Shown in pieces: positions 7,141 to 49,925 of a stretch of DNA of 64,000 nucleotides. The DNA lies in NCBI GenBank assembly GCA_977017575.1, contig CDRNVI010000053.1:186001-250000 (forward strand). Direction: 5' to 3'. The notes beneath the pieces are model-generated. The model was not told where the DNA came from and searched no databases. It was given only the letters and a program-made list of their open reading frames with translations. Made by a program: the position numbers and the translations under genes. Origin of the DNA: Paramoeba atlantica (lineage: Eukaryota > Protista > Discosea). Within the stretch, counting starts at the first letter, position 1, and every line of letters begins with the position of its first letter.

Positions 7141-8945
7141 CCGAGGAATATTACCTTTATCTTTTTTTTCGGTCAAAAAAAGTTTTTGGGTCCCCCCGCG
7201 AAATTGTTTGATTCTTTTTGTCGGGCAAAAGGCCGGCGAAAGGGGGGTGACGGGGGTGACGCAAGGACGTGAAGGGGGTGGCGACAGGGGGTGGCGAAAG
7301 GGGGAACACGGCCAGTCGAGGCACATGAGGAAAAGCGCTCTTACAAAAAAAAACAAGCAACAAGGTAAAATTGCATAAATTATAAACCCCCCACAGCGAA
7401 TAAATCACCCCCCTCTTTTTTTTGTACAACGAGGCTTAGGGGGGTTGCGGCACCACTTTTTCGTTCAAAATTTTGAGATCTGCACGTTCCCGCTGTTTTT
7501 AGACCTCTTCACAGATAACAAATTAAAACTCATTTTTTTAATGACGTTTTTACATAGTCATGCTAATATTACCCGAAAAATCTCATGTTCCTCGACCAGG
7601 GGGGGAGAAGGGGGTCAACATGAAAATGGTGTCACAGATCTTCGCTAGGGGAACGAGATCTCTCGATTGCAACAAAAATGATCAAAAACAGATAACAAAC
7701 ATTCAACTTGTCACGTGGTGGAATATTTGTCTTTGATTGGTTCTTTCTTGAAACGGTGATAAATCAACTTTTTTAAGCTGTCCCCTTTACTTTTTGCTTG
7801 AAGGGGCCTAAGGTGGTTAAGATATCATTTTCTCGTTCAAAATTCAGAGATCTACACGTTCCCACCATTTTTAGATCATTTTAGAAACTGAAAAAAAAAA
7901 TTATTTTTAGGTTCTATTTTTTTGCATCGTCATACCACACTAATTTAAGAAAACAAACACTCCGCGACCAGGGGGCACAAGTGGGTCAATATTAAAAAAT
8001 AGCGGCAAAGATCTTTGCTAGGAGAACGAGATCTCTCGTTCGCAACTAAAATCAGCAAAAACGGACAAAAATAATTGAATTTCTCATGGGAGGAGAAGAT
8101 TTATTTTGTTAAAGTGTGAGAAATTGGTCTCTTGAAAAATGAGAAGAAAGTGATAATCCATCTATCGGATGCACGCATTTGAGAGCCTTGGTTCCATGCT
8201 ATAACGCGCAAAGTCTTTGTGTTGGGAACAGCAAAATGCAACAAAAATGAGCTCAAACGGACACTTGGCTGAAAAGTTAGAGGGGGGTAACTTTTCGCTG
8301 TGGGGGGTTTACGTTATGCAGACCTCCTTCCGTTTTCTTCGGCTTTCGAAGCCAATTTTTCTTTTTTAATCTTTTCGTTAAACGCGGAGGTAGTTTTCAA
8401 CGCGAAGCGCGCAGCGTAAGTGACTTCTATGTTGAAAACAACCACCACGTTTAGCGAAGAGCCTAAAAAAGAAAATTACATAGCTTATACATTCGTATGT
8501 ACATAGGGTATACTCATCGTATTAGGTATCTTGTATAAAGTGTCTTACACATAGGATGCATGAGTGCTGATCCTTCACAACCTGGTGATCTGGACGTTCT
8601 GAGCGGTGGTTTCGTATTGAAAAACTTAATGTATGAACTGAATCCCTTTGGGTCAGGAAAGGTCCTTCTCTCTGCTGTCAAACCGGGGACGAAGCAGGCT
8701 GAGCAGCGCACGATACCTCCCTATACCCCTGCATTACCTTCTTCACATCCTTGCGCTTTTGAGAATGATCAACTAGCGAAATGTAATGCCACAATCGACG
8801 CACAAGTACTACTGGGTGGTCGGTGTGCAATATGTAATTCCGAACGCAAAAATCTGATGAAATGTCTAACCAAGCATAAATACACTGATGTATGAAATTA
8901 ACGGTAATGTATCATTTGAGGTACTGTGACCTCTCTCTTAATATA

Positions 8946-9694
8946 CAGGGGGGTGCACGAAAATATGGGGGGGGGTCAAAATTCTTATAACTCGCCCAAT
9001 TTTGGAAAATAATAGCGCATTCGAGAGCTTTCACAGAGTTACGTGTCATGTGATAATGCGTTTCCCGCATTTTTTTTTTTAAGAATATAAAAAAATCATG
9101 ATTTTTCAAAGTGCAAAATTCTGCAGTTTTTTGAAAAAAATGCCTTTTTTGTGAATTTATCGACTTTTTTGATCCTAATACAGTATTATGCCCCAGAAAA
9201 GGTCATATTCGAATAATAAAAAGGTGCAGAAGCGGAGTAGATTTTGTTATTCGCCTCGTGGGCAACTTAAAGCATCTCACAGGATACTCTTGGTTAAAAA
9301 ATTCTCGATTCTGATATGGACGAGCATAAAAACTCGCTTTGTCCAACGGATCGTGCAGGTTTGAGACGAGCGATCGCCTCTAGGATCGAAAATAAAAAGG
9401 AGCGCAATACGATGTATTTTTGAGGACTTTAAAGAGTGTTCCAACGCGTGTGGAAATTGTGTTGGACAAAAAAGGTGGAAATTGTGGATACTCGCTTTTT
9501 TTACCAGAAAAAAAAGCTTGCAGTAGCCCTTTTTACGGTATTCAGGAGAATGCATATACCTGGAAACTACGCAAAACGTAATATCACATGACACGTAACT
9601 CTGTGAGAGCTCTCGAATGCGCTATTATTTTCCAAAATTCGCCGAGTTGTAAGAAATATAACCCCCCCCCCCCATATTTTCGTGCACCCCCCTG
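8946..9694. mobile_element. Tc1/mariner-type MITE with ~120-bp TIRs
   Basis: TA|CAGGGGGGTGCACGAAAATATGGG...CCCATATTTTCGTGCACCCCCCTG|TA; inverted similarity extends ~120 bp. Confidence 0.88.
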
Positions 9695-24155: not shown

Positions 24156-24801
24156 TACCTTCTCAGGTATTAGGAAGAGACGCAACCCTGAGAGCTCATA
24201 TTTTCAAAACCAACGTTTTGTCTTTTCGATGCTACCCATGTTGAGTTCAAATACAATATTAACCCCTCGACAAGAATAAGGCACGCCCTTGTTTTTCGCG
24301 CGCGGGGACTCATGGGGGTTGCAGCACCATTTTTTCGTTCACAATTTTGAGATCTGTGCGTTCCTGGGGTTTTTAGACTGTTTTAAAAATTTGAAAAAAA
24401 TAGTTTGAGAAAGTAATTTTTGAGAACAGTTTTTGTAAAATTATGGTAAAATCCAAGTATCGTCCACCAAGTGGAGGGATGACACCATGGGGAAAATATT
24501 ATAATAATATTTTGATGCCACCGAATGCGACTCTCTGCTTTCCATCATGGGATGCACGACAGGCTTCTCTAGAATCTGACGTTATTGCGACACAGATGTT
24601 CCTCCGCGGTAATGTGGAGAATATTGGATTTGCGTGAAGTTGGTTTGACAAGAAAGCGACGTTTATAGATATTTGCTATACCTGTAGTACATTTTTTTAA
24701 GTTTACTTAGGGTGTTTTTCCGTGAGTTCTTAATGCTGGTCTTGTTTTTCCCTTTGTAAACATACAAGTTTGAAGTTTCTTCCGTTCTATATTCTATAAT
24801 A

Positions 24802-24965
24802 CTGTACCCCCCCCTAGTTATCTGTCGCTACTTTTCGAGAAAAGGTGACAGATAACTAGGGGGGGTAGGGGTGCGTCAGATAACTAGGGGGGTCAAAGTG
24901 CGACAGATAACTAGGGGGGTCCGTCGTCAAAAAAAGCGAGGGAACGAAATGTTACAGAAACGGTA
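24802..24965. mobile_element. partial copy of the 62356-62704 MITE family
   Basis: CTGTACCCCCCCCTAGTTATCTGTC end and CAGATAACTAGGGG repeats. Confidence 0.7.
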
Positions 24966-25221
24966 TCTTTATTGCCTAGGAAAATTCCTTTCTACCCCAA
25001 TGGGGTACTACAAGCTGAAGGCATGCGCCTACGGGTTAAAAGAAGCCCAGAGAGTAATTTACACACATTTTATTGGGCTAAAATATTAATTACGTTACAT
25101 CAAAGGGTAAAGTCATCCATGGGTAAGGTCATCCATGGGTTAAAGTAAAACATCGGGAGCTATCGGACTCCAATTTGCACAAAGGTCACGACGGGAAAGA
25201 ATGTGAATATCACGGTTTTCA

Positions 25222-25399
25222 AACCCAGGGTAAAGGGGACGAGGGAGATACCAATAGTGCAGGTGAGGCAGTTTCCCACGGGAAAAACGGTATCTCCACC
25301 TTTTTCGGCGCCTGTGCCACAGGGGGGATACCGTATTTCATGTGGGAAACTGCCGCACCTACACTATTGGTATCTCCGTCGTCCCCTTTACCCTGGGTT
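25222..25399. repeat. 178-bp foldback related to 6526-6709
   Basis: ~73-bp inverted arms at roughly 90% identity, short loop. Confidence 0.85.
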
Positions 25400-25546
25400 A
25401 CATGGTAAAAACATGTTCCCTAGGACTCCTTACAGCTTCCCACGCGAGGAAGTCGTCGTCGCTGCGTTTATTTTAATCATACAGGGTGGTACCTGTAGAG
25501 ACATAAAATTGTGGTATAGGGACGCATGCCACGTATATACCATCAA

Positions 25547-25754
25547 TTATTGAAGGGAATATCCTAGTGTGCCCCCCTCCCATTCAAGGGATTCCCGTTG
25601 GGTCCATATTACAAAGCTTCCACGAACTGCAGCGGCACACATGCTCTGTAGGCATTTAAAAGCTAACGGCTTATTGCCGTTAAAAAGGCTGTATAGATGA
25701 TTGCATGTGGTGTTCGGAAGACCTCTTGCCCCGATTTCAAATACTAGTAGATGA
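25547..25754 (-). pseudogene. HERO/NeSL-like RLE retrotransposon, extreme C-terminus (downstream of the IS30 insertion)
   Basis: HLLVFEIGARG...AAVRGSFVIWTQR. Confidence 0.75.
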
Positions 25755-27201
25755 TGTGGATTGTCATACTCAGAGCAACACCTTTTTGTCATACTCAGTG
25801 CAACAAAAATGAGAAAAATATGGGTGTGTTCCGGATGTCAGGATTTTCGCATACTCAGTGCAACACTGTTTTTTCGGTCGGACAGCACCACGAACGGACG
25901 CGGGATTGTATGAGCCACGGACGCGGGATTGTATGTAAGAAACAATGGATTAAGAAAAAAAAATTATATAAGGAGAAGAAAAAAGGAGTACCTGGATAAT
26001 CGATATTGACGGAACAACATAACGCGTTTCTTTAGTAAAGAGATAAACTTTTTACCTTTACTGCTTTACAACTTACGGCTATACAACTTACTGCTTTCAG
26101 TATAGTACCGTCTCTTTATAGTAAAATTTAAGTCTCTTTGGGGAGACCCATTTCAAGCACTTTCGTGGCCGTTTGTTCAGTTTGTTGACCGTCTTACTAA
26201 CTTCGCGCTGTGTCAACTCCCCAAAAGTATCTGACTTGGTGTGATACTACCGGACCAGACCATTCATGTTTTCAACGGCCCCCTTTTCCCACGAATGGTA
26301 AGGATGACAAAAGTAAGATTTGCATCCTAACTTCTTGTTGATGGCTTCATGATTGGTATTTTCAGTTCCATTGTCATACGTTATGGTATGCACTTTGTAT
26401 TTCTTTAAGGCTTTCAGCACCTGTGTTTCAACTTGTTTTGACTGCTTGGATTGAAATACACGAAGGACAACAAACCTACTCTTTCGTTCACAAAGGGTCA
26501 GGATGAAATACCCACTTTTCTTTGCTCCCTCAATTAAATCGGCCTCCCAATCACCATACCGACGTCGTGTGTTTACTATTTGGGGACGATGATCGATAGA
26601 AACCCGGTTTGGAATGGTACTTCGACCATGAATGCGTCGAACATAAGGCCGCCTTCCGCGGATCCGTAGGCACTTATGAATCTTCCCCCATTGTCTTTGT
26701 CTCGACGAACAAATCGATAGATTGTGGAAGTGGATGGTGAACCTTGTGAGCCGACAACAAGTGTATTAGCAACCTGCTCCGGGCTGTGAAGCTTTCGGAG
26801 ACGGGTCTTTACATTTTTTTCAAGACTGGCTCGAATTAGACGTGGTCTGGCCCCTTTATTAACCAGTCGTCTCTTGGCAACACGATGGGCACGGCTGGAA
26901 CGGTATTGCCCACCTCTGTTCCTGTTGCGTGCCAGCTCACGACATACCGTACTTGGGGACTTATCAATCGATCGGGCAATTTCCCTCTTCGTTGCGCCAC
27001 TTTCAAACATCGTTTGAATATCTTTGCGATTGCTTTCAGATAATCTTCTGTACTTTTGCATGAATGAACTCAATTATGTAGAAATTAGTATATGAAGTGT
27101 ACTATGTAGAAATTAACCTTTTGTTGCGCTGAGTATGACAATTATTATTATTTTGTTGCACTGAGTATGACAATTTGTTGCACTGACATTGACAATCCAC
27201 C
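25755..27201 (-). mobile_element. IS30-family insertion sequence, full length (1447 bp)
   Basis: 26-bp TIRs (21/26 identical) TGTGGATTGTCATACTCAGAGCAACA, TGA target duplication (25752-54 / 27202-04), three TGTCATACTCAGTGCAACA-like motifs at each end, IS30 transposase. Confidence 0.92.
26066..27073 (-). pseudogene. IS30-family transposase (~335 aa; frameshift ~26683, in-frame TAG at 26247-26249)
   Basis: HTH REIARSIDKSPSTVCRELARN, HSPEQVA, TIYRFV; second frame reads IPNRVSIDHRP, GDWEADL, TITYDNGTE, FCHPYHSWEKGAVENMNGLVR, LNKRPRKCL. Confidence 0.92.
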
Positions 27202-27900
27202 TGACATCTCGGGTTAGACATTCTGCGGCGGTGTAGTATGGCATTGTATTTGTCGCGTTTCCGTTGGTGTGACGCATCCATGGCCTCCTCCCATGGCACT
27301 ATCAGTTCGATTATGTATTCTGTTCCATCACTGAGTGTCACAAGTGCATCTGGGCGTAATAGGATGTCTGAAAACCACCAGGATGGAAGATTCCGCTCCC
27401 CTGGTAGATCGAAATGCTGTTGGGCTGTGTTCTGGGAGGCTCGAAGAAACTTTGATAACTCTTTAAGGACAAAGTTATGACGGAGCGTGTATCTATCTTG
27501 CGTGAGGGCAACTTTGCAACCAGTAAGTATGTGTCGTACGGTTTCCGTTTCTCTCTTACACAGAGTACATTTGGTGTCCGTGTACATTGTGATTCCCCAT
27601 CTTCTTCGGTTTGCCTTCGTGGGGAGCGCCGTAGTTGTCATGGCGGCAGCGTGGAAACGTGATATTTTCTCATTTCTGTTACCGTTGACAGCAGCTACAC
27701 AAAAAAATCCACCTGGCACTATCCCCACTGGCAGGCTGGAATATGAACGATTACTAGCCCGCTCAAGCTATCGCAAAGTAAATCACGTCCAAATAGCCTC
27801 CTGGCGTGACATCTGTCACGGTATTACAATAGGATGCTCTTCTGCCTCGGAAGCCGAAAAGCTCAATGTAGCCTGACACCTTCTTGGGGCCGTCAAACGC
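27202..27900 (-). pseudogene. HERO/NeSL-like RLE retrotransposon fragment (zinc knuckle + endonuclease)
   Basis: LPTKAN, CTLC..HILTGC, RYTLRH, LRPD, ELIVPWE, KRDKY. Confidence 0.85.
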
Positions 27901-27949
27901 TACCTCTTTATCCCCTCAGAAAAACTAAGCCACCGACAGCTGGCGCACG

Positions 27950-30660
27950 AACTTCGTTCACGTTTTTTAAAACCTGATCAGGAATGCAATCCTCCGAAAA
28001 CGCCCATTCCTCCAGCTAATGATAAATCCTCAGCGGCAGAGAAACGATCGCTTAGACTTCTTAGAAGTAGAGCGATATCGAAGGCCGCGCGCGCCCTAGA
28101 CAGTACGGAGAGAGATCCCCTCACCCCAGCAGAGATAAAGCGGGCCGCGGCCGTTTTACACCCACGCAGTATCGCTTCCCTATGCCGCGCCCCTCTGAGG
28201 ACACTACGGTCAACGTAGCTGGTCCAGATACCATTGAAGCGAATCGGCGGATGCTCCTGCGGCGGATGCTCAGCTCCTGGCCCCTCAGGTTGGACCCGCG
28301 AACTCTTGTCCCCCATCTCCTTATGGACGAACATGTTCTAGCATGCGTCGTCTGGATTGTAAAGCGAGCGTTGGAAAACACAGCTCCACCAGGCCTACGA
28401 AATGCCCTAACGCAGAGCGACTTATGTCTCTTCAGGAAAGATGACATCCCAAGTGACACCCCCGCATGCCGCCCGATTGCTTTGGGAGAGCTATTTTTAA
28501 AACTAGCGAGCTCCTATGCACGGTCTCAAGTTTCGAGCTTCACGGAGAAAAAATTCAAAGATATTCAATTTGGTGTGGGTGCACCACATGGAACGCATCA
28601 CATCATTTTTCGTTCACGTCGTGCTTTCAGAAGCAGTGTGAACAATACTCTACTAACAGTTGACCTTAAAAATGGCTTCAATACGATTGAACGAGCTTTT
28701 ATTGCTAGAGTCATACGTCAATGCCTCCAATTACAACCTCTGATTGGGATCTTTCTCTTCGCATACAGTCTAGTCTTATTCGTGGACTCGAACCCATCTC
28801 TAGCAGCCGAGGCGTACGTCAGGGAGAGGCGTTAGCACATTTATAATGCATATTAACTGCACGTTTATAATGCATACTAAGCGGCACATTCAAATGCATA
28901 TAGCACATTCACATGCATAACAGCACATTCACATGCATAATGCACATTCACATGCATATTAAGCGGCACATTCACATGCATAAAATTTTAGGCACGGATT
29001 TCAACTTTTTCGAAGTTGGTGCGGGGTGCTATGGAAGCTCACCTTTGCTCCCGGTGAGGCCCCGGAGTTGCGAGAGGCCTCCATACCCCACAACTACCAC
29101 CTTCCCCCCCTATTTAGCGGGGGTCGCGCGAGCGACCCCTGATAAATGGGGGGAAGGTGGTAGTTGTTTTGGGGGAAATGAGAGGCCGAACGCACGGAGG
29201 GGCCGGCCGGGCCAATGAGCCAATAATATCTACACGTTTTTTGAATTTTGTGATTAAAAGGGAAGGATCAACAAAATTGAGAAATATGCATGTGAATGTG
29301 CTATATGCATGCGAATGTGCTATATGCATTTGAATGTGCTGTTATGTATGTGAATGTGCCGCTTAGTATGCAATATCAATGTGCAGTAAATATGCATTTG
29401 TATGTGCTATATGCATGTGAATGTGCTGTTATGCATGTGAATGTGCTGTTATGCACCTGAATGTGCTATATGCATGTGAATGTGCTAATATGCATCTGAA
29501 TGTGCTATATGCATTATAAATGCGCCGCTTAGTATGCATTATAAATGTGCGGGCGGCAGATCCTTTGCACCATCTACCCAAGCAGGCAGCTTTGACTCTC
29601 TTCCGACACTGTGGAGCAGTAAGAAGGAATCACATAGTACAGAGTCACGAATTGGAATCAACATTGGAGGCGAACAGGCAGATTGACGCTGCAGTAATGA
29701 ATTTCGCGGAAGAGCTACTAGGTGGGTCCGGAACGCTTGAGAAGAACCCGTTGCAAAATAAAACTTTTACGGGTGACCTCATCGGATCCACTCTTTGGCG
29801 AAAACGCGGAGCAGCTTTATTCTGATACCCCCCACGCGGTCTACCCCCCCCCGAGTCTCATTTTGGCGGAAGAGCACAGTCTTCAAACAAACTCGAATTA
29901 CGAACACCCCTAAGTCATAAGCACAAGGCTCTCTTCGCGCAGCTCTCCAACAAATATTCGAAATACTGGATGGAAGCGGTCCCTAATCGCCCCGAATTTT
30001 ACCGACGCGACTCGGAGTGGCAGACTGCCCTCCGCATGCGTTATCTCCTAAGCCTAGTGTCGTCCCCAAGCATACAATGTGTATTCGGGGAACTGCATCC
30101 CAATGACTACTTCCCAGTGCATGCTCTTGATTGCAGTCGAGCACGCGGCAAGACGGGAGCATCGAGACACGCCCTAGTAAAATCATGCTCCTCAAATATT
30201 TTGAGACAGTATGGATTTAACCCCGACATTATGGAGCCCAGCTTCGAAGAAGGAAAAGGCCTAGACTTATTATTTCAAATGGGACATCAACTTGTTATGG
30301 TGGATGTCACAACAGCCAACCCATTAGCTCCTTCTTACGTAGAGATGGAGAGTAAAGCGCCCGGAAAAACCCTTGTCCGGGCAGAGGCCACGAAGCACAA
30401 GACCTACGACAGTCTTGCAGCAACACATGTAATGAAGCCTTTTCCCCTAGCCTTTTCTGCATTCGGTGTTCCCGGAAACGAAACTCTAGCATTTCTACGG
30501 AAGTGCGGAGGGTACACGTCGGACAGGCACGGTTTTCTCCGCCATGCTATACAACGTGGCCATACAACGTGGCAACGCCCAAATCATTTCGGCCGCCACG
30601 TTTCAATGGCGGCAAACGGGTATCTTGTAGGGAGTAATTATTCATAAATAATATAAAAAA
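27950..30660 (+). mobile_element. second degenerate CRE-like non-LTR retrotransposon, interrupted at ~28828-29550
   Basis: RPIALGE, QFGVG, VDLKNGFN and GVRQG (RT); RHALVK, GLDL, VDVTTANP (RLE); A-rich 3' end. Confidence 0.85.
28828..29550 (-). mobile_element. palindromic-core element with inverted satellite arms (foldback architecture)
   Basis: Ends GCACATTTATAATGCAT / ATGCATTATAAATGTGC; 19-20-bp ATGCAT satellite arms; core hairpin at ~29090-29165. Confidence 0.75.
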
Positions 30661-33037: not shown

Positions 33038-33063
33038 AAAGATACAGTTTCTGTACCTTGTTG
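33038..33063 (+). other. spliced-leader (mini-exon) 3' part remnant
   Basis: AAAGATACAGTTTCTGTACCTTGTTG resembles the euglenozoan SL exon end ...AAAG(A/C)TACAGTTTCTGTACTTTATTG; not followed by the GT intron. Confidence 0.7.
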
Positions 33064-36344: not shown

Positions 36345-36416
36345 TTCCGATACCGGGAATCGAACCCGGGTTTTGCGGGTGAGAGCCGCATGTGCTACCG
36401 ACTATACCATATCGGA
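36345..36416 (-). tRNA. tRNA-Glu(CTC)
   Basis: Cloverleaf TCCGATA/TATCGGA, anticodon loop CT-CTC-AC, GGTTCGATTCC. Confidence 0.95.
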
Positions 36417-36491
36417 ACAAGAATGTAACGGATGAAATGTTTGGAATTGAGAATAGGAGGCTTGATGAATTACCGCTGTGCACATCAAATA

Positions 36492-36563
36492 GGCTGAATG
36501 GTCTAGTGGCATGATTCCCGCTTAGGGTGCGGGAGGTCCCGGGTTCGATTCCCGGTTCAGCCC
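36492..36563 (+). tRNA. tRNA-Pro(AGG)
   Basis: CCCGC-TT-AGG-GT-GCGGG, T-loop, T5 terminator. Confidence 0.96.
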
Positions 36564-36585
36564 TTTTTCTGTACATGGAAACAAA

Positions 36586-36658
36586 TACCTCAGACGGGAC
36601 TCGAACCCGCAACCTTTGGCTTAGGAAGCCAACGCCTTAACCATTAGGCTACTGAGGC
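36586..36658 (-). tRNA. tRNA-Arg(CCT)
   Basis: TTGGC-TT-CCT-AA-GCCAA, GGTTCGAGTCC. Confidence 0.95.
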
Positions 36659-36688
36659 GCCTGAACTGATGTGGGATGGAGGAGAAAA

Positions 36689-36769
36689 CGAGGACGGCAG
36701 GATTCGAACCTGCGCGTGAGAACACACTTGATTTCGAGTCAAGCCTCTTAACCACTTGAGTACGCCCTC
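36689..36769 (-). tRNA. tRNA-Ser(CGA)
   Basis: CTTGA-CT-CGA-AA-TCAAG, long variable arm, GGTTCGAATCC. Confidence 0.95.
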
Positions 36770-36789
36770 TAATTGTGCGGTTGCGTGGC

Positions 36790-36861
36790 GATCCTGTGGC
36801 TCAAAGGTAGAGCGTCAGACTCCGGATCTGAAAGTTGCGGGTTCGAGTCCCGTCAGGATTA
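36790..36861 (+). tRNA. tRNA-Arg(CCG)
   Basis: TCAGA-CT-CCG-GA-TCTGA, GGTTCGAGTCC. Confidence 0.94.
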
Positions 36862-36923
36862 TTTCCGACTAACGTATACCAAAGACCAAGGGGCCCTAAC
36901 CTCATGCTCGTAGCTCCTTCAAC

Positions 36924-36995
36924 GATCGCTTGGTCTAGTGGCATGATTCTCGTTTTGGGTACGAGAGGTCACGGGTTCGATTCCCGTAGCGGTCC
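36924..36995 (+). tRNA. tRNA-Pro(TGG)
   Basis: CTCGT-TT-TGG-GT-ACGAG, T5 terminator. Confidence 0.94.
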
Positions 36996-37057
36996 TTTTT
37001 ACTCTCCGGCAAAACATTTTCCTCCATTTTCAGAGAATCTTCATCCCCACGGAGTGT

Positions 37058-37130
37058 GCCCGTCTAGCTCAGTCGGTAGAGCGCCAGACTCTTAATCTGG
37101 TGGTCGTGGGTTCGAGCCCCACGGTGGGTG
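37058..37130 (+). tRNA. tRNA-Lys(CTT)
   Basis: CCAGA-CT-CTT-AA-TCTGG, GGTTCGAGCCC. Confidence 0.95.
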
Positions 37131-37190
37131 TTTTCTCCCCTCGCCAGACCGTTCGCTCGGTGAGCGCAGAGCGAGAGGAAAAATGAGTAA

Positions 37191-37262
37191 GGTCTCATAG
37201 TGTAGTGGTGAGCACAGCGGACTTTGAATCCGCTAACCTGGGTTCGATTCCCAGTGAGACTG
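37191..37262 (+). tRNA. tRNA-Gln(TTG)
   Basis: GCGGA-CT-TTG-AA-TCCGC, GGTTCGATTCC. Confidence 0.93.
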
Positions 37263-37317
37263 ATTTAGCAATTCTTACCCATTCTAACAAGCAAAGTGAA
37301 TGTAAGACCCGAAGCAG

Positions 37318-37390
37318 TCCTCCGTGGCGCAGTAGGTAGCGCGTTAGACTGTTAATCTACAGGTCGTTGGTTCGAACCCAACCGGAGGAG
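37318..37390 (+). tRNA. tRNA-Asn(GTT)
   Basis: TCCTCCG/CGGAGGA acceptor, CT-GTT-AA loop, T4 terminator. Confidence 0.93.
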
Positions 37391-49366: not shown

Positions 49367-49925
49367 TTCTCCACGGGAGATCAGCGTGAGTCTTGCGTAA
49401 AGAAGATGATGTTAAGGTGTCGCGTGTCGCAGTGTATGGTTTCATCAAGCGCGATGAATCGCTCGGGGGAACACTATAAGTGCCTGCGTTGAGGCGGTGG
49501 TCGAGGCCGTCGCCTGCGCGGCAAAAACCTTTTTAAGATACCGAAGAAACGGCCAATTGTTACGCGAACGGCCAATCGTTATCAACACGCGGGGAAGATT
49601 TGGTGACTGGGAGTGCAACCAAATAGAGGGATCAAAGCACAGTGGGTTCTTTCTAAGTTTGCTGGAACAGAAAAACAGATTTGGTATACTGAAGATACTG
49701 CGCACGAAGAAGAGTGAGGTCGTTGCAGAGGCCATTGGTAGCATCCTGGAACACTATCTTCTTTCATACGATTACGTATGGCAATGCGTCAGAGTTTGCG
49801 AAACATGGGAATGTAAACACGCTTCTTGGGTGTGACTCATTCTTTTGCAAACCCTATGCCAGGTGGGAAAACGGTAGAGTAGAAAACTTTGACGGTGTGG
49901 TTAGAGATTTCTTCTCCCCAGACTA
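49367..49925 (+). pseudogene. second, divergent IS30-family transposase fragment
   Basis: SPREIS, VYGFIKRD..GG...KCLR, RERP, GDWE, HTITYGNASEF, FCKPYARWENGRVENFDGVVR in shifting frames; no TIRs seen. Confidence 0.8.

Follow-up and report, generated by a model that had tools for sequence, protein, structure and literature searches.

To our knowledge, IS30, a large bacterial family of DDE transposons, has no recognised counterpart in eukaryotes. The family's Escherichia coli element, IS30 itself, is 1221 bp long, with one repeat per end, an open reading frame (ORF) that nearly fills the element and a bacterial host. Accepted links between bacterial insertion sequences (IS) and eukaryotic transposons were listed by Kojima and Bao in 2023 for IS630, IS1380, IS1595, ISAzo13, IS256, IS5/ISL2, IS3 and IS481 (PMC10045372); IS30 appears nowhere in that account, which predicted that more such families exist, and IS481EU was still the newest superfamily of this kind, with IS30 absent, in a report from January 2026 on a 2025 meeting. 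A bacterial IS in a eukaryotic genome is also represented by the IS5-like element of a bdelloid rotifer cited in the same work (PMC10045372). Here we describe a 1447-bp IS30-family element located at 25755-27201 of a stretch of 64,000 nucleotides, referred to below as the window, which corresponds to C53:186001-250000 in an assembly of 45.7 Mb and 248 contigs. We hold with high confidence that the nuclear genome of a kinetoplastid-like protist harbours an IS30-family transposon and that the window contains a dead, complete copy of it.

A preliminary description, made from the sequence alone, had reported a 1447-bp element at 25752-27204 with 26-bp terminal inverted repeats (TIRs) and a TGA target site duplication (TSD). 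These limits were borne out, the coordinates taking in both TGA copies (25752-25754 and 27202-27204), and the outermost 25-26 nt of the two ends were found to be 84% complementary in the window copy. Moreover, a motif of ~20 nt (TTGTCATACTCAGTGCAACA) is present in three copies at each end of the element, namely the terminal repeat and two others farther inside. The parts of the element, together with the two pieces of the ORF that it interrupts, are the following.

25547-25751, minus strand: downstream piece of the host ORF, HLLVFEIGARG... to the stop codon, in frame after removal of the element and one TGA.
25752-25754, no strand: left copy of the TSD, TGA.
25755-25780, plus strand: left TIR, 26 nt, TGTGGATTGTCATACTCAGAGCAACA, at the end of the element that lies downstream of the transposase gene, with the TGTxGATT outer and GCAACA inner blocks as in E. 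coli IS30.
25786-25808, plus strand: subterminal repeat, second copy of the end motif on the left, 100% complementary to 27151-27173.
25850-25865, plus strand: core of the third copy of the end motif on the left, CATACTCAGTGCAACA.
25866-26126, minus strand: non-coding stretch downstream of the transposase gene, in which 19 nt are directly repeated (25894-25912 and 25917-25935) and the sense strand shows a pyrimidine-rich tract.
26127-27061, minus strand: pseudogene of an IS30-family transposase with HTH_38 and DDE/rve domains, in which each of D, D and E is kept.
27119-27141, minus strand: third copy of the end motif on the right.
27151-27173, minus strand: second copy of the end motif on the right.
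27176-27201, minus strand: right TIR, 26 nt, upstream of the transposase gene.
27202-27204, no strand: right copy of the TSD, TGA.
27205-27728, minus strand: upstream piece of the host ORF, with a zf-RVT zinc knuckle and a PD...E.K endonuclease, ending in ...RMSNPRC, from Pfam and paralogue alignment.

The transposase gene runs from 27061 to 26127 on the minus strand and encodes an N-terminal HTH_38 domain and a C-terminal integrase core (rve). Comparison with intact paralogues revealed three lesions in the window copy: a 1-bp deletion near 26684 that shifts the frame, a TAG codon at 26247-26249 where other copies have CAG, and a 7-bp deletion near 26130. The window copy is, in consequence, a dead yet structurally complete cut-and-paste DNA transposon, and as its ends are intact, it could still be mobilised by intact copies elsewhere in the genome. 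The stretch 25866-26126 of its non-coding tail gave no significant fold (z = 0.79).

The family to which the transposase belongs was established with an intact paralogue of 317 aa (L002:1640-2590), which scored 250.7 bits on the NCBIfam equivalog model NF033563 transpos_IS30 (cut-off, 80 bits), compared with 61 bits on the IS481 model and 43 bits on the IS21 model, both far under their respective cut-offs. In this protein HTH_38 spans residues 3-46 and rve residues 168-257, and the DDE triad (D175, D230, E264) aligns with that of E. coli IS30 (InsI) and of bacterial IS30 proteins. The spacing of 33 residues from the second D to the E equals that of E. coli IS30, with which the N-terminal HTH and C-terminal DDE arrangement is also shared, at a protein identity of 33%; the triad has been kept even in the broken window copy. 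The transposase is thus a member of the IS30 family. The full IS30 motif set recognised in the preliminary description was correct, whereas the length of ~335 aa proposed there was not, intact copies having 317 aa.

The ends of the element point to the same family. IS30 TIRs measure 20-30 bp, and those found here have 26 nt and read TGTGGATT...GCAACA, compared to TGTAGATT...GCAACA in IS30A. The ends of IS30A from E. coli K-12 MG1655 are TGTAGATTCAATTGGTCAACGCAACA and TGTAGATTCAATCTGTCAATGCAACA; the first of them, from the insI1 copy, corresponds to TGTGGATTGTCATACTCAGTGCAACA in the protist element and agrees with the E. coli end quoted in the preliminary description, both elements having 26-nt ends with TGTxGATT as the outer block and GCAACA as the inner block. 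TSDs in the IS30 family are described by ISfinder as 2-3 bp long. The duplication has 2 bp (AC) at the E. coli IS30A site, whereas in the protist it has 3 bp at five of the six sites of subfamily A, which includes the window copy, and also at the site of a sister subfamily B, the remaining subfamily-A site having 4 bp. The compact architecture of IS30 elements (~1.0-1.25 kb, a single repeat at either end and one ORF that takes up the element) was, in contrast, not found: with 1447 bp, three repeats per end, a non-coding tail of ~350 bp and a eukaryotic host, the protist element departs from E. coli IS30 in every one of these respects.

The nature of the insertion site allowed us to identify the genome in which the transposase acted. 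The motifs RPD...ELxVPWE...K..KY within 27205-27728 are those of a typical restriction-like endonuclease of non-LTR (long terminal repeat) retrotransposons, and at least 150 paralogues of this endonuclease domain are present in the genome, ~50% identical and in frames of up to ~1850 aa. In one of them (L048) a reverse transcriptase (RT) domain, RVT_1, was detected upstream of the endonuclease domain with 109 bits, and zf-RVT is present as well. The interrupted element is thus a non-LTR retrotransposon in which RT, zinc knuckle and C-terminal PD...E.K endonuclease follow in this order, as they do in the HERO clade; "HERO-like" is the label given to it in the preliminary description. Removal of the IS30 element and one TGA rejoins the ORF in frame (...RMSNPRC + HLLVFEIGARG...), as had been claimed, and the same spacing was found in all 11 uninterrupted paralogues compared, which are collinear through the site, with no indel and with exactly three codons between the flank pieces. 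When six paralogues were aligned as protein, residue-by-residue continuity without any gap was observed across the insertion site. This codon-precise insertion with a TSD in a retroelement supports the earlier claim that the transposase acted in a eukaryotic nucleus, and because the target is itself a eukaryote-only element, the window copy provides the cleanest proof of nuclear transposition.

An RT-like ORF is located on the plus strand at 28182-28835, opposite the interrupted ORF, with a weak RVT_1 match of 23 bits that falls under the cut-off. Because of this ORF on the opposite strand, the target of the IS30 insertion is taken to be a 5'-truncated retroelement copy beside another element. 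On the other side, ~290 bp left of the insertion, a repeat of ~250 bp (25221-25466) has at least 80 matches in the genome and matches itself on the opposite strand, as a foldback element or a miniature inverted-repeat transposable element (MITE) would.

The window copy is one of many. At least 86 DNA matches to the element over dozens of contigs and at least 133 protein matches to the transposase on many contigs (six-frame translation of the genome) were detected, raw counts which are inflated by pairs of contigs carrying identical IS30 copies in identical flanks (C30/C3, C52/C8, C39/C37 and C58/C10). These paired contigs are haplotigs or recent segmental duplications, and each pair was counted as a single insertion. 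Full or near-full copies of subfamily A are 97-99% identical to each other, except for one older copy at ~93%, and private substitutions of the window copy amount to ~1.3%. On this basis, at least six independent subfamily-A insertions were identified, each with its own duplication of 3-4 bp.

Window: TGA.
C30/C3: ACGT (4 bp).
C52/C8: AGT.
C70: ACA.
C70/C44: CAG.
C39/C37: ACT, at an internally deleted copy.

The recurrence of these ends at six or more separate sites, each with a 3-4-bp duplication of its own, excludes chance; a count of copies with distinct flanks and short TSDs, proposed as a check in the preliminary description, yielded at least six independent sites. The full 317-aa frame is intact at three loci, on C3, C30 and C47 (L002/L003 and L006), and the ratio of nonsynonymous (dN) to synonymous (dS) substitution rates between two intact subfamily-A copies was ~0.9, with very few changes, matching the expectation for drift after insertion.

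Two further kinds of copies were observed. A derivative of ~830 bp (L012/L013, at C39:86347-87174 and C37:80202-81029) consists of element positions 4-540 and 1154-1449 and retains both ends and the ACT duplication, so it may be a non-autonomous form. Other IS30-like copies in the genome are 37-45% identical, many of them with intact frames of 330-390 aa, and the window itself holds a degraded IS30-like fragment (49432-49917, plus strand) with 29-30% protein identity to subfamilies A and B, in which the GDWE and VEN catalytic motifs are still visible.

Evidence of recent movement came from subfamily B. The nearest database proteins belong to the ENA assembly ERZ24900291, which derives from the same organism, as shown by the 100% identity of its contig ctg2714l with C8 over 8.2 kb. 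Another contig from this assembly, ctg3222l (L031), is 96-97% identical to and collinear with C32:161255-175107, and carries at positions 7838-9262 a 1425-bp subfamily-B element with a CCT duplication, whose protein is 57% identical to that of subfamily A. C32 is uninterrupted at this site, where the flank alignments end and begin at 171678 and 171676, respectively, with an overlap of 3 bp. The filled site in L031 and the empty one in C32 imply that only one of the two haplotypes bears the insertion, and this polymorphism is the strongest sign of recent movement of the family. Six further subfamily-B copies are 97-98% identical to the L031 element, and extra copies of the end motif are found inside both termini in this subfamily too. 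The rotifer IS5-like element is reportedly single-copy and without sign of spread, whereas the protist IS30 has many copies, several subfamilies, independent TSDs and haplotype polymorphism. That the transposase has become a domesticated host gene, and is no longer part of a mobile element, is extremely improbable in view of these data: intact frames persist and the protein is constrained, as would be expected of such a gene, but inverted repeats and TSDs occur at many different sites, copies are internally deleted, truncated or polymorphic between haplotypes, and the window copy is itself a pseudogene.

Support for the junctions was sought in Logan short-read contigs from three runs, which were compared with 24700-28300. 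At the left junction, each of the three runs provided a 368-bp contig (25437-25804) reaching 50 bases into the element, free of mismatches in two of the runs and with a single one in the other. At the right junction, contigs covering 27172-27653 and 27172-27829 were obtained from two runs. Both junctions, at which a chimera had been considered in the preliminary description, are therefore bridged by short-read contigs, a support drawn from reads and not from the long-read assembly itself. In addition, the same window encodes an NXF-type NTF2-domain protein (nuclear RNA export factor), a Cdc48-like double AAA ATPase and a pogo-type transposase, and a kinetoplastid-type spliced-leader 3' motif (CAGTTTCTGTACTTTGTTG) was present at 11 sites in the genome compared to 0 in the reversed control. 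These genes and this motif indicate that the host is a eukaryote, consistent with a kinetoplastid-like protist. A remnant of the spliced-leader motif with two mismatches lies at 33046-33063 of the window.

Contamination or misassembly, by which the IS of a co-cultured or prey bacterium would have been stitched into a eukaryotic contig, deserves almost no credence. It is true that the family signature of the transposase is entirely bacterial and that protists of such kind are grown with bacteria. However, besides the crossed junctions and the codon-precise insertion within a retrotransposon ORF, the matches are spread over dozens of contigs and six sites have their own TSDs and eukaryotic flanks. 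Instead of the single copy nearly identical to the IS of a co-cultured bacterium that had been feared, we found many copies, with bacterial best matches at 43-51% identity. Contamination and domestication were thus both rejected on the grounds of copy number, TSDs, precise ORF insertion, polymorphism and the pseudogene.

A search of 5.8 billion proteins revealed no close relative outside the organism's own assembly, the best matches outside the host organism having 43-51% protein identity. The readable contigs of these best matches showed bacterial neighbourhoods, including an IS200-type transposase, an aminotransferase, DNA polymerase III beta and a cytochrome oxidase operon. The best named plasmid matches were 40-41% identical and bore the names IS4351 and IS30 family, while the best matches among species-representative bacterial genomes, at 43-47%, were mostly from aquatic Verrucomicrobiota, with multi-copy elements on one contig of 4.2 Mb. 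No relative was detected among IMG/VR viral contigs when a virus was considered as vector. The nearest relatives (43-51%) are hence metagenomic IS30s and those from metagenome-assembled Verrucomicrobiota (Akkermansiaceae, Puniceicoccaceae and others), which differ from the protist element in having only one inverted repeat at each end and bacterial neighbours, and in lacking a long non-coding tail. One bacterial relative (L062/L063) could be delimited from two contexts as a compact IS of 1084 bp with a single repeat per end and nothing comparable to the tail of the protist element; its end starts GGCGGATTCAA, like the GGCGGATTGTCAA of subfamily B. Given this compact architecture, both the triple repeats and the 350-bp tail appear to be derived traits of the protist lineage.

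Phylogenetic trees were built for four protist subfamilies with 57-98% mutual identity, the copies at 29-45% being left out, and were rooted arbitrarily on E. coli IS30. The four subfamilies formed one clade, with a Shimodaira-Hasegawa (SH)-like support of 100 in FastTree (179 rows) and an SH approximate likelihood ratio test (SH-aLRT) support of 99 in IQ-TREE (62 rows). This clade was placed inside a group supported by a value of 96, whose other members are mostly Verrucomicrobiota. Between subfamilies dN was 0.29-0.46 whereas synonymous sites were saturated, supporting that the protein was under constraint as the clade diversified.

That the element was transferred from bacteria several times independently, and did not enter once and then diversify, is a possibility that we regard as real but doubtful. 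Identities among the organism's own copies go down to 29-45%, under the 43-51% that separate the element from its nearest bacterial relatives, as separate arrivals would predict; on the other hand, the four sampled subfamilies are monophyletic with strong support, and multiplied end repeats are found in both subfamilies A and B.

A number of points count against our main reading, of a bacterial IS30 that entered the nuclear genome and moved there. The trees speak for the four subfamilies sampled, and a single entry for all IS30-like copies, those at 29-45% included, would reach beyond them. The stem branch of the protist clade is long (0.49 changes per site) and leads to no close donor, as an old eukaryotic lineage would. 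The contigs at the right junction contain only 30 bases of the element, just under the 31-base rule, and the three runs, being three samples from a single study that probably also gave rise to the assembly, do not amount to independent material. The sole candidate RNA run contained nothing of the examined stretch. No empty allele of the window site was found in the genome, where the flanks 25467-25751 and 27205-27697 have no other match, nor in the three runs, in which no read contig joined 25754 to 27205; the window copy therefore looks fixed in the sequenced material. Finally, no abutted junction between a right end and a left end (0-10 bp apart) was present in the assembly. Abutted ends are the mark of the circle or dimer pathway of IS30, whose transient intermediates would not be assembled.

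The long stem, with no donor closer than 51%, is also what would be expected if IS30 were an ancient eukaryotic lineage, inherited vertically in euglenozoans or more widely and so far unsampled, and the copies at 29-45% likewise imply either long residence or several lineages. Nevertheless, we consider such an ancient lineage rather improbable, as nothing above 51% was found outside the organism's own assembly among the 5.8 billion proteins, the clade sits within bacterial IS30 diversity (on the arbitrary E. coli IS30 root) and the 26-nt end is still recognisable as being of the E. coli IS30 type. IS30 is, moreover, missing where published lists connect IS families with eukaryotic transposons (PMC10045372).

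Taking these data together, we infer a bacterial origin for the element and a transfer from bacteria to the protist. An IS30 element, whose nearest sampled kin are mostly found in aquatic Verrucomicrobiota, would have entered the protist lineage from a bacterium, and purifying selection would have acted on its transposase as the element branched into subfamilies. In this process the element may have gained the extra transposase-binding repeats at both ends and the non-coding tail of ~350 bp. The inner repeats share sequence identity with the termini and are probably additional binding sites that aid assembly of the transposition complex. The steps of transposition itself can be proposed from what is established for IS30 and for DDE transposases in general: the HTH region would bind the 26-nt ends, the DDE domain would cleave these ends and attach the 3'-OH groups to phosphates of the target that lie 3 bp from one another, in this case by staggered cuts within the host endonuclease domain, and gap repair would yield the TGA duplication. 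The window copy would later have acquired its two frameshifts and one stop codon. Regarding expression, kinetoplastids transcribe long polycistronic units, and gene-specific promoters are not needed. The transposase may be expressed through the processing of a polycistronic transcript, with no need of a promoter of its own, and such promoter-free transcription may explain why a newly arrived bacterial gene could have been expressed.

The case most similar to the one proposed here is IS481EU, also a protist-confined DDE lineage with its closest kin in a prokaryotic IS family, which was read as the result of transfer followed by spread; it differs in the IS family involved and in its TSDs, of ~4, 15 or 25 bp compared to 3-4 bp in the protist IS30 (PMC10045372). 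Superfamilies such as IS481EU and IS3EU are recognised by multi-copy nuclear elements with inverted repeats and TSDs at independent sites, as found here, and by eukaryotic copies that form a clade apart from prokaryotic members, as found for the four subfamilies. Because it lacks the compact one-repeat architecture and its host is eukaryotic, we class the element as a candidate for a new, IS30-derived superfamily of eukaryotic transposons. We favour, with some reserve, the view that it represents an undescribed superfamily ("IS30EU"), in which a bacterial IS30 would have crossed over, proved catalytically competent in the nucleus, rebuilt its ends and remained active, the latter being suggested by the intact copies and the heterozygous insertion. 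Neither a described eukaryotic IS30 lineage nor the term "IS30EU" was found in the literature searched, which comprised 8.4 million papers and in which IS30 turned up in studies of bacteria or was mentioned in passing, Repbase, Dfam and ISfinder lying outside that search, and the possibility raised in the preliminary description that the family is already catalogued in eukaryotes found no support there. A protist IS30 lineage that has multiplied, diversified and stayed polymorphic would be a further connection between the transposons of bacteria and those of eukaryotes, of the sort predicted by Kojima and Bao. It would also provide a natural test case for the requirements of a bacterial transposase acting in chromatin; the changes visible in this element are the multiplied end repeats and the non-coding tail.

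Two minor observations were made in the same material. Nine tRNA genes, on both strands, are grouped within 1.05 kb at 36345-37390 of the window. An ORF with an IS1595/Merlin-type DDE domain (PF12762) was detected at L060:152-1111, and at least nine copies ~99% identical to its 1.2-kb segment are present in the genome, so that a second IS-related transposon family looks to have been recently active.

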